The notes under the pieces were generated by a model. It ran no database searches, was not told where the DNA came from, and saw nothing but the letters and a program-made list of their open reading frames with translations. Shown in pieces: positions 44,301-47,300 of a DNA stretch of 64,000 nt; the first letter of the stretch is position 1, and the number at the start of each line of letters is the position of its first letter. Origin of the DNA: Ylistrum balloti (lineage: Eukaryota); assembly GCF_031769215.1 (NCBI RefSeq), contig NW_026782626.1, positions 124,001-188,000 on the forward strand, given 5' to 3'. The position numbers and the translations under genes are program-made.

Positions 44301-47300
44301 AAGGTTTACGGTAGTGACGACGCTAAGTATAATAGAAAGATATACGTATTAGAAGGTTTTCCAGGAGGTTTAGTGATGACGGTACGTATTATAGGAGGTT
44401 TACGGGAATGACGACGGTACGTATTATAGAAGGTTTACGGTAATGACGACGGTACGTATTACAGAAGGTTAACGGGAGTGACGACGGTTAGTATTATAGG
44501 AAGTTTACCGTAACGATTACGGTTATTATTATAGAAGGTTTACGGGAATGACAACCGATCGTATTATAGGAGGTTTACGGGAATGGCGAAGGTAAGTATT
44601 GTAGGAGGTTTACGGTAGTGACGACAGTGCGTATTATAGGAGGTTTACGGTAGTGACGACAGTGCGAATTAAAGGAGGTTTACGGTAACGATTACGGTAC
44701 GTATTGTAGGAGGTTTACGGTAGTGACGACAGTGCGTATCATAGAACGTTTACGGTAACGATTACGGTACGTATTGTAGGAGGTTTACGGTAGTGACGAC
44801 AGTGCGTATTATAGAACGTTTACGGTAACGATTACGGTACGTATTGTAGGAGGTTTACGGTAGTGACGACAGTGCGTATTATAGAACGTTTACGGTAACG
44901 AGGTTTAGGAGGTTTACGGGAGTGACGACGGTAAGTATTATAGGAAGATTACCGTAACGATTACGGTACGTATTGTAGGAGGTTTACGGTAGTGACGACA
45001 GTGCGTATTATAGAACGTTTACGGTAACGACGACGGTACGTATTGTAGGAGGTTTATGGTAGTGACGACTGTAGGTATTATAGAAAGTTTACGGTAGAGA
45101 CGACGGTACGTATTGTAGGAGGTTTACGGTAGCGATGACGGTACGTATTATAGAAGGATAACGGGAATGACAACGGTGCGTATTATAGGAGGTTAACGGG
45201 AGTGACGACATTACGTATTATAGAAGGTTTACGGTAGTGACGACAGTGCGTATTATAGAAGGTTTACGGTAGTGACGATAGTGCGTATTATAGAAGGTTT
45301 TCGGTAGTGACGACTGTAAGTATATACGGGAAGTGTAATTACATAACACAAACTAACGTTGTCTTGTCATTTTTTTCAATAAATTAAACAGCACAGTGAT
45401 GTAAAAATTATTTGATAGTCAAATCACTTGCCATGAAATTGCCTTTGATATTTAAGTCACAACTCAAGTACAAAAATTGACGAGGCGATCTATCACAATT
45501 TATCCCAGTGATATATATTGTGCTGGAAAAAACGCAAACAATCCATAGCGAATTTTTCAAATGTTGTGTTGTTTTTGTTAAATCTATTCCAATTCTTCTG
45601 ATGAGTGTTTTACTGAACCCAGTTATGTAAATAGGATATATATTCAATTACTCTTTTATTTTAAATGCATTCTTAATAGATTATTTCAAATAGAATAGTA
45701 ATATTATTGGAACATATGTTAACGACTTGGCATATCAAACTACCATAATGCCTTGTTCTCATGTAACAAAATACCATCTTGACACAGTGTGCCGAATTCT
45801 AGTATGAACTTCGACTACAAACACTGATACAGAACACACAAGCAAAGCTTATATACATGTATATATAGAATAGGGTTTTTTCAATTCAAATGGGATTTTA
45901 TGAGAAATGCGAACGGATCTTAGATTTTTTCTTGGAATGCAATAACGAATTTTTTTTTTAATCTCAACATGTAAGATATTTTCATCTTGTCACTTCAAAA
46001 TAAAACTGGAAATGTATTAAATTAAAAATGCGGCAAACAAAAGACAATATTTGTGCAATTTTCAATTTATGTCATAAAGTTATTGTCCCTTTTGTGACAT
46101 CACAATCCATTGTAACTCGCGTACAGTTGTTGTACAGTTTTGAGATACTCAGATCTTAATTCAGAATAAAGATATATACATCACTTCTGTTTATATTATA
46201 TTTTCGTGGTATACAAACCATTTAGACCATTTTTTTTAGAATTCCTGGTAGAAATGAAAAAAATAGACCATTATCTATAATGAAAAATAAATATAATCTT
46301 TTGCATGTTCTATTTTTGTTTCTATGATCACAGGTATAGACATACCACGACAACACAGTGTAAATGGCGGACGCCTATTTAGTCCTCGTGTAATCAGCAA
46401 TGTCTTACACAGCACTGGACGGAGTGACCTTGACGAAGGAGGTCGTTCTGTGCTGTTGATGTCTTGGGGAACAATAACCGCTCTCGATCTTTTAGGAACA
46501 AGTGTGTCGCAAGGTACCGTATTTTACCTACACAGAAAGAAAGGAGCTGCATACTTAAGCAAAAAAAATATATCGTTTTCGACTGTTCATATTTTTGCGT
46601 TGGAATAAATTTGTGAAAGAAGTCTTTTTCGTGAATAATACGGAACGAATTAAAATTAGCACTTCTTGAAAATAGCAGCATTTTCAGAAACTTGTTTTAT
46701 CTACAAATCAAGAGCTAACTCGTCAAATTGATTACATATTACAATAGGATTTATCGCTATATCTATCCTGACGTCATGTTCGGTATTACTTCATCTATTT
46801 ACGTTTCTCTTAATTAGATTCCATTATTACATCTTAAAGTTAAATCCAAAATTATTTTGATATTTAAGGAAGATTTTTTTTTTCATTAACGTTCTTGGTA
46901 TCCTTCCTTTCTTTTATATTGTTGCAGGTTTAAATAATTCCGATATCACGTGTTGTCCTGTCGGTCAATCTACAGCGGATCAGATGTACGTTACGTATTG
47001 GTAATTGTAACAGACTGAAAAGAAACAAGGACTACTTAATAGGAATGTAATTTGATAAAATCCCTATTTTACGAAACTGTTTTTATAAAAAAGATCATGA
47101 GATCCCCCTCCCATGAGTATCATTATAAGAAATGAAAATGTGAGAAAGTAACGTGATTTTAGGGTAGATTTAGTCTGATTTTATTCGATGCATCAATTTC
47201 AATATATTGTTTAAGAACAGTCTCTCTTTGAGCAGAAGATCGCTATCATTGGTATTATATTTAATCGTCTTCATTGTTTTAAAAGAGCTTCGTGTTTTCC

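Follow-up and report, generated by a model that had tools for sequence, protein, structure and literature searches.

What becomes of a secreted haem peroxidase that loses the residues with which it would activate hydrogen peroxide and keeps nearly everything else? This question is raised by a 64,000-nucleotide stretch of the Ylistrum balloti genome (contig NW_026782626.1, positions 124,001 to 188,000 of the forward strand; hereafter the window, whose coordinates are used throughout), which carries a 12-exon gene of the animal haem-peroxidase family. An initial annotation, made from the letters of the window, had noticed that the distal catalytic motif of this gene reads WGTITALD and had proposed a selectively maintained pseudo-peroxidase. 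The analysis presented here supports that core claim, and the gene product is probably a repurposed "dead enzyme" that has been retained by selection in at least three scallop genera. With moderate confidence, we regard it as a functional secreted scallop paralogue of the haem peroxidases that is stabilised by calcium, holds haem non-covalently and works by binding rather than by catalysis driven by hydrogen peroxide.

An animal haem peroxidase with altered distal motifs

The window gene is a member of the animal haem-peroxidase family PF03098 (peroxidase-cyclooxygenase superfamily, families 1-3), as exons 3, 7, 9 and 10 match the family profile with E values from 7e-12 to 9e-65. The best score belongs to exon 9 (E = 9e-65), and exon 4 by itself is sub-threshold at 20.5 bits. 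An exhaustive HMMER search with exon 9 retrieved an orthologue from Mizuhopecten yessoensis, P0002 (756 residues, 69% identity), and it was this protein, not the window protein, that was used for the structure model and the full-length database searches. P0002 matches sheep lactoperoxidase with E = 7.8e-88, and its HMMER alignments to lactoperoxidase and myeloperoxidase have no gaps over either distal motif, such that WGTFAVLD lies under WGQIVDHD and GAPRNSLVP under GDSRASEQI. The AlphaFold2 model of P0002, built from a 50-sequence alignment, has a mean pLDDT of 88 (91-96 in the distal helix region) and a pTM of 0.87, and a Foldseek search pairs it with pro-myeloperoxidase, myeloperoxidase and lactoperoxidase at target-normalised TM values of 0.83-0.90. 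Exon 4 alone (59 amino acids) gave zero matches to solved structures even at E = 10, and for this reason the residue mapping rests on the alignment of the orthologue together with multiple alignments. In both a 24-sequence MAFFT alignment and an HMM alignment of 363 domains, WGTITALD and GDQRNTLV occupy the columns of WGQ[FLIM][ILV]DHD and GDxR..E, respectively, and DQRNTLVP from exon 9 of the window aligns to DTRSSEMP of myeloperoxidase.

Both motifs stand in the codons as the initial annotation had read them. WGTITALD is encoded by TGG GGA ACA ATA ACC GCT CTC GAT (46465-46488, + strand), and in GDQRNTLV the Gly codon is split by intron 8 (49389 and 50167-50168) and followed by D-Q-R-N-T-L-V at 50169-50189. 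The superfamily is defined by two distal signatures, namely X-G-Q-X-X-D-H-D-X, which holds the catalytic His, an ester-forming Asp and a halide-binding Gln, and X-R-X-X-E-X, which holds the catalytic Arg and an ester-forming Glu (PMC4420034). WGTITALD preserves just the final calcium-ligand Asp of the first signature, and in the second Arg363 is present with Leu366 at the Glu position. In myeloperoxidase numbering, which is used for all equivalents unless lactoperoxidase is named, the substitutions are Gln91 to Thr226, Asp94 to Ala229, His95 to Leu230 and Glu242 to Leu366. The MAFFT and HMM alignments thus bear out the replacement of distal Gln, Asp and His by Thr, Ala and Leu and the lack of any ester-forming residue. 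They also recover the residues that had been listed as retained, i.e. Arg239 (Arg363), Asp96 (Asp231), the TSYIDAS loop, His336 (His467) and Asn421 (Asn549). The calcium site, composed of Asp96 and a T-x-F/Y-x-D-x-S loop, is represented by Asp231 and TSYIDAS. The proximal side further includes Arg333 (Arg464), which lies with His467 in FRFGH, and Arg424 (Arg552) and His428 (His556), which lie with Asn549 in NIQRGRDHG.

Orthologues, phylogeny and selection

Distal Gln, Asp and His are all absent from the window protein, from Mizuhopecten P0002 (WGTFAVLD, GAPRNSLVP) and from Pecten maximus P0151 (WGTLIVFD, GDSKNTLLP, FRSGH). In a maximum-likelihood tree of 33 proteins (LG+C20+F+G4), these three His-less proteins form one clade with support of 100/100. 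Its sister clade, also at 100/100, consists of the scallop 'peroxidase-like proteins' P0152 (Mizuhopecten, XP_021361140), P0153 (Ylistrum) and P0154 (Argopecten), all of which keep WGQxIDHD. Since the His-less clade is sister to a canonical scallop clade, the duplication took place within the scallop lineage, later than the oyster split, and the loss is older than the divergence of at least three genera. The canonical sisters are ~765 residues long, show 55-58% identity, and share the calcium loop, FRFGH, NIQRGRDHG and a residue other than Glu at the Glu242 position. They differ in their intact distal motif, in the presence of the equivalent of lactoperoxidase His266, and in an approximately threefold slower evolution (dN/dS of 0.09 versus 0.26). 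Terminal branches measure 0.24-0.31 in the His-less clade and 0.08-0.13 in the canonical sister clade. As judged from the alignments, the proximal His-Asn pair and the propionate-binding Arg are present in all three His-less genera.

Codons for selection tests were taken from the genomic loci of five relatives. Approximate pairwise dN/dS by the Nei-Gojobori method is 0.18-0.25 in the His-less clade and 0.04-0.09 among the canonical sisters, and the maximum-likelihood omega under GY94+F3X4 is 0.259 versus 0.092. Within the peroxidase domain the values are 0.12-0.24 and 0.07-0.09, respectively, and in the N-terminal pro-region they are 0.36-0.51 and 0.11-0.14. The window gene is under purifying selection. 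Relaxed selection, which had been named in advance as the sign of a young pseudogene, is not what is seen, the overall range of 0.17-0.26 being far below 1.

Losses confined to the distal network

Which positions changed can be judged against 201 canonical domains, among which 108 positions are at least 85% conserved. All three His-less proteins retain 96 of these, and only three are changed in every one of them: Gln226, His230 and His374 (named here by the canonical residue). Gln226 is Thr throughout, His230 is Leu, Leu or Phe, and His374 is Tyr, Phe or Tyr, with Phe in Mizuhopecten. The Asp94 position carries Ala, Val or Val, Arg363 is kept in two of the three genera and is Lys in Pecten, and the conserved cysteines are kept. 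His374 lies 11 residues past the catalytic Arg, and this spacing, counted from lactoperoxidase Arg255 and Glu258, equates it with lactoperoxidase His266. That residue belongs to Fe-W1-His109-W2-His266, a chain of hydrogen bonds that reaches into the substrate channel (PMC8614691). Given this equivalence, every lineage-wide loss affects the same functional unit, namely the distal network of hydrogen bonds and proton relay. The third of them, at the His266 position, had been missed by the initial annotation.

The loss of Glu242, which that annotation had counted with the distal changes, stands apart. Leu does occupy the position in the window protein, but the change is not specific to it, as the canonical scallop sisters already have Val there. 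Across 278 related domains, Val is found in 48 and Leu in 13, or about one-fifth together. Because the sisters already have Val, the absence of Glu242 is, as far as these sequences tell, ancestral to the duplication and separate from the loss of the distal network. The canonical sisters would accordingly form at most the Asp ester link to haem, and the His-less proteins would form none. At the codon level, the steps are simple ones, CAY to CTC, GAT to GCT or GTT, and GTG to CTG or TTG, with synonymous and conservative drift afterwards.

Assembly error, decay and alternative exons

Two explanations would deprive the altered motif of meaning at the protein level. One is that the gene is a silent or decaying copy, such as a young pseudogene, or that the motif stems from an assembly error. 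Decayed partial duplicates do occur at the locus (inverted at 53557-56381 in the window; truncated and inverted in Pecten), and a sequencing-run search returned no RNA run for the species. Nevertheless, this explanation is largely refuted and very improbable. The 12-exon model gives exactly the 753 codons plus TGA that had been claimed, with the frame complete, every intron GT-AG and all splice sites intact; the same substitutions recur in three genera, with dN/dS of 0.17-0.26 and 96 of 108 core positions kept. Contigs from a public DNA run cover exon 4 at ~11x and show zero differences from the window at 46400-46568. Elsewhere ~0.5-0.7% of positions differ, so these contigs are not simply the same assembly. 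Both differences checked in exon 7 are synonymous (47717 GGA>GGG and 47756 AAC>AAT), and those in exons 6 and 8 appear to stem from a contig piece of the inverted pseudo-copy. Both assembly error at exon 4 and a pseudogene are therefore rejected, and the earlier judgement that error or decay is unlikely holds. The other explanation, that the canonical distal motif is restored in the mRNA through an alternative exon 4 or through editing, has next to no probability. No positive support for it was found, although the intron before exon 4 does have an unusual feature, a minisatellite of 35-bp units that bears donor-like sites. When the 64-kb window is scanned in six frames with a regular expression, no QxxDH-like or other distal-like motif is found beyond exon 4. 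A low-stringency tblastn search with P0002 and seven canonical exon-4 peptides yields nothing in the window except exon 4 and the decayed inverted copy of it, and just a single His-less exon 4 in each of the Mizuhopecten and Pecten loci. An alternative canonical exon 4, which the initial annotation had named as a finding that would overturn its reading, is thus rejected for the window and for both orthologous loci, and restoration of Gln, Asp and His in the window gene would require at least four base changes.

Comparison with known peroxidases and inactive homologues

How does this protein compare with described systems? Mammalian myeloperoxidase and lactoperoxidase (family 1) have the same fold, proximal His-Asn pair, catalytic Arg and calcium site at 30-34% identity; relative to them the window protein is without the distal Gln, the catalytic His, both ester-forming residues (Asp and Glu) and the channel His266. 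The initial annotation had drawn an analogy to dual oxidases, and this analogy holds in part. The peroxidase homology domain of human DUOX1 lacks the haem-ligand His and shows no haem density, yet it retains the An_peroxidase fold and its cation sites despite lost peroxidase catalysis (PMC7794343). In this respect, a catalytically dead domain with a retained fold, the two are alike. However, the DUOX1 domain is fused to a membrane NADPH oxidase, whereas the scallop protein is predicted to be free, secreted and single-domain, and its whole proximal side is intact. A dual oxidase is marked by EF-hands, a NOX transmembrane and dehydrogenase core and the absence of the haem-ligand His; the window protein has no transmembrane segment and has the proximal His.

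PXDNL provides a second likeness, as a secreted homologue of an active animal peroxidase in which peroxidase activity has been lost. This multidomain protein is a peroxidasin homologue that arose independently in vertebrates, whereas the scallop protein has no domain besides the peroxidase domain. At the same distal motif, Gln-to-Trp and Asp-to-Glu changes abolish peroxidasin activity, and PXDNL is without peroxidase activity (PMC8533639). Peroxinectin (family 3) has an active peroxidase domain and, for integrin binding, a KGD or RGD motif (PMC4420034); the 753-residue window product contains no RGD, KGD or LDV motif, and its distal catalytic residues are absent. The N-terminal domains of nematode mlt-7-like proteins and of salmon louse LsPxtl-1 are An_peroxidase domains without QxxDHD and RxxE, as in the scallop protein (PMC10579435). 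These degenerate domains also lose the proximal His motif, and they sit beside an intact catalytic domain in the same protein. By this comparison, the scallop lineage is unlike DUOX1, PXDNL and the two-domain proteins in that its product is a predicted free single-domain protein in which only the distal network has been lost.

The closest parallel comes from abalones. A search with the Haliotis asinina protein XP_067656762 (P0193) delineated a His-less abalone clade, including H. rubra P0291 and P0292 and H. cracherodii P0085, with distal motifs of the form WG[QAL][YF][VL][VT][FL]D. These proteins are likewise single-domain, with Asp94 changed to Val or Thr and His95 to Phe or Leu, and they keep proximal [MFL]RFGH and NIQRGRDHG. 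Unlike the scallop proteins, some of them retain Gln, and they carry Pro in place of the catalytic Arg and Arg or Gln at the position of His266. The same abalone genomes also encode canonical paralogues, and P0193 groups with a canonical abalone paralogue (88/91, moderate support) and not with the scallop clade. As read from these groupings, the route of distal loss has been taken at least twice in molluscs, independently in scallops and abalones. A literature search for the term 'pseudo-peroxidase' returned only globin and lipoxygenase uses, and the accession numbers of the orthologues do not occur in searchable papers.

Proposed function and competing explanations

By established peroxidase enzymology, the lack of a distal His or a substitute acid-base residue should slow formation of Compound I from hydrogen peroxide by orders of magnitude. 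The His-less protein, having no distal acid-base catalyst, is thus expected to form Compound I too slowly to be of use, and activity as a classical peroxidase or halogenating enzyme is very improbable. With both Asp94 and Glu242 absent, haem would not be ester-linked. Persistence of the proximal His, of Asn as its partner and of the propionate-binding Arg across dS > 1 argues that haem is probably still bound, non-covalently. The gene arose by duplication in the scallop lineage, as placed by the tree, after which the distal hydrogen-bond and proton-relay network was replaced with Thr, hydrophobic or aromatic residues, as read from the alignments: Gln to Thr, the ester-forming Asp to Ala or Val, the catalytic His to Leu or Phe, and the second channel His (lactoperoxidase His266) to Tyr or Phe. 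The remaining fold is under purifying selection, with the calcium site, the conserved cysteines, the propionate-binding Arg and the proximal His with its partner Asn among the features held. As the haem-holding side is kept and the distal catalyst is gone, the working mode is most likely binding and not peroxidase catalysis, and the protein would act as a calcium-stabilised, non-covalent haem holder.

Several observations weigh against this proposal. The case for haem binding comes from the conserved proximal residues only. Purifying selection has about one-third of the strength seen in the catalytic sisters, and dS in the His-less clade is about 1.1-1.7, near saturation, so that the dN/dS figures are approximate. 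The replacement residues vary between genera (Ala or Val, Leu or Phe, Tyr or Phe, and Arg to Lys in Pecten), and such non-identical replacements are more readily reconciled with lost function than with a new site under precise tuning. No orthologue was found in the annotated Argopecten and Ylistrum proteomes, and the gene may for this reason be dispensable in some scallops. Moreover, the protein collections searched held no transcript-derived relatives, and for the window species the sequencing-run search returned one DNA-like run and none of RNA.

An alternative hypothesis is that the protein is an enzyme with a new chemistry, in which His-ligated haem in a mostly hydrophobic distal pocket with one Arg would act on lipid or organic hydroperoxides, O2 or NO in place of halide oxidation driven by hydrogen peroxide. 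The proximal side and the propionate ligands are strictly kept and two of the three genera retain Arg363; the distal replacements form a consistent, non-random set of Thr, hydrophobic or aromatic residues; purifying selection persists; and a similar Val/Phe distal pocket was reached independently in abalones. We nonetheless consider this hypothesis unlikely. At the Arg position Pecten has Lys and the abalone clade Pro, and Mizuhopecten has Phe where Tyr374 stands, so that no new polar catalytic residue is conserved. Constraint is also about threefold weaker than in the catalytic sisters. A haem-free role, in which the peroxidase fold is a mere scaffold for a structural, adhesive or matrix protein, possibly in shell, byssus or cell adhesion, seems more doubtful still. 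It would have inactive precedents in the DUOX1 domain without haem density (PMC7794343) and in PXDNL without peroxidase activity (PMC8533639), peroxidases are present in scallop byssal proteomes (PMC5700196, PMC9168380), and the predicted mature protein is secreted and basic (pI 9.1). Unlike in DUOX1, however, the proximal His, the Asn partner and both propionate-binding Arg are conserved in three genera across dS > 1. The product has no RGD or KGD motif, neither the gene nor the orthologue accessions are tied to any shell or byssus data set, and nothing ties the peroxidases of the byssal proteomes to the window gene. The adhesive, matrix, shell or byssus role suggested by the initial annotation is thus unsupported.

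If the non-covalent haem holder that we favour is set beside the abalone proteins, a broader and rather speculative idea arises, to which we attach a low probability. Molluscs may have repeatedly (at least twice, in scallops and abalones) turned secreted peroxidases into His-ligated, non-covalent haem proteins with a hydrophobic distal pocket. These would form a functional class for which the peroxidase-cyclooxygenase superfamily has no described example so far, serving as sensors, carriers or scavengers (of NO, O2, CO, sulfide or haem) or as new hydroperoxide catalysts.

Catalytically dead members of enzyme families often adopt regulatory or binding roles. The descriptions of inactive homologues that we found in the animal haem-peroxidase family concern the dual-oxidase ectodomain, PXDNL and, in two-domain invertebrate proteins, the degenerate first domains. 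The scallop lineage offers a cleaner natural experiment, in which the distal hydrogen-bond network alone has been removed and the haem-holding side is under selection, and a canonical sister paralogue in the same genomes allows for direct comparison; abalones provide a convergent case. Names assigned automatically, such as 'chorion peroxidase-like' and 'lactoperoxidase-like', probably credit the His-less proteins with more activity than they have, which matters where peroxidases are counted in mollusc immunity, shell or byssus data sets.

Gene model, duplicates and neighbouring sequence

The gene was modelled by tblastn of P0002 on the window, after which splice borders were read by eye (Table 1); the exon pattern of the Mizuhopecten locus matches that of the window gene. 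The window DNA is AT-rich and eukaryotic, with zero N. The predicted product has an N-terminal signal peptide, zero transmembrane segments and no additional domains, in agreement with the secretion proposed by the initial annotation. The mature protein is predicted to be ~82 kDa, with three N-x-S/T sites and 14 cysteines beyond the signal peptide.

Table 1 Exons and key residues of the His-less peroxidase gene in window coordinates
Feature	Position	Strand	Content
Exon 1	41117..41312	+	Start codon, signal peptide (hydrophobic core residues 7-20; ANA/S cleavage-like site near residue 23, the slash marking the cut)
Exon 2	42188..42314	+	N-terminal pro-region
Exon 3	43443..43657	+	An_peroxidase domain begins (YRSADGTCNN)
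Exon 4	46334..46513	+	Bears the altered distal motif
WGTITALD	46465..46488	+	Exon 4; Thr226 = Gln91, Ala229 = Asp94, Leu230 = distal His95, Asp231 = calcium ligand Asp96 (kept)
Exon 5	46928..46985	+	
Exon 6	47286..47392	+	CFPIKIP segment
Exon 7	47659..47760	+	Calcium-binding loop TSYIDAS, codons 47685-47705
Exon 8	49297..49389	+	
Exon 9	50167..50884	+	GDQRNTLV, FRFGH, NIQRGRDHG
Arg363 (kept)	50175-50177	+	Exon 9
Leu366 (Glu242 position)	50184-50186	+	Exon 9
Tyr374 (lactoperoxidase His266 position)	50208-50210	+	Exon 9
Proximal His467 in FRFGH	50487-50489	+	Exon 9
Asn549, Arg552, His556 in NIQRGRDHG	50733-50756	+	Exon 9
Exon 10	51204..51373	+	
Exon 11	51916..52018	+	
Exon 12	52432..52624	+	With TGA stop

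The inverted duplicate at 53557-56381 (- strand), 1-4 kb downstream of the stop codon, is a partial, decayed copy of exons 4, 5, 6 and 8 derived from the parent sequence 46055-49403, with DNA identity to the parent from 68% to 96%. Its exon-4 copy is 96% identical over 148 bp, after which come a 28-bp deletion that removes the GRSVLLMSWG codons and an in-frame stop. The residual motif, ..TVSD, indicates that the parent gene was already without the distal His when it was copied. One public-run contig spans exon 4 to the duplicate, so the duplicate is not an assembly artefact.

Inverted partial duplications at the locus are seen in two scallop genera. In Pecten maximus (LR736849.1, 35078258-35102447), a truncated copy, P0001 (384 amino acids, exons 7-10 only, with GDPRNNLVP and FMYGH), lies ~37 kb from the full-length His-less gene, and an inverted exon-9 pseudo-copy with stop codons stands immediately upstream of it on the opposite strand. 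P0001, being truncated and beside this pseudo-copy, was rejected as a true orthologue; an exon 9 query for short or fragmentary relatives found nothing nearer than this copy. At the Mizuhopecten locus, the tail-to-tail neighbour of the His-less gene (31689-39925 of the fetched Mizuhopecten sequence, - strand) is a more distant peroxidase paralogue (44% identity, GDGRRHEVP). It was rejected as a second His-less gene, being a distant paralogue that keeps GDGRRHE (Arg and Glu), with its distal exon outside the fetched locus. No such peroxidase neighbour is seen in the window up to 64000.

The 35-bp minisatellite of intron 3 (43649-45323, + strand; ~48.5 copies, 79% matches) begins inside exon 3, 9 bp short of its end, and takes in the donor site of that exon. 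It holds 14 donor-like heptamers (G/GTACGT or G/GTAAGT, the slash marking the splice point), the first of which lies 35 bp past the real donor and would shift the frame if used; translation that ran past the real donor would end at a stop 27 codons on. The interval 44400-45000 is left uncovered by the public contigs, which pile up at 45000-45200. Elsewhere in the window, stretches upstream of the gene (39047-39783, + strand) and in intron 1 (41509-41919, + strand) resemble by eye fragments of non-LTR retrotransposon reverse transcriptase, and an open stretch at 59392-59893 (- strand) resembles, also by eye, the N-terminus of a mariner-type transposase.

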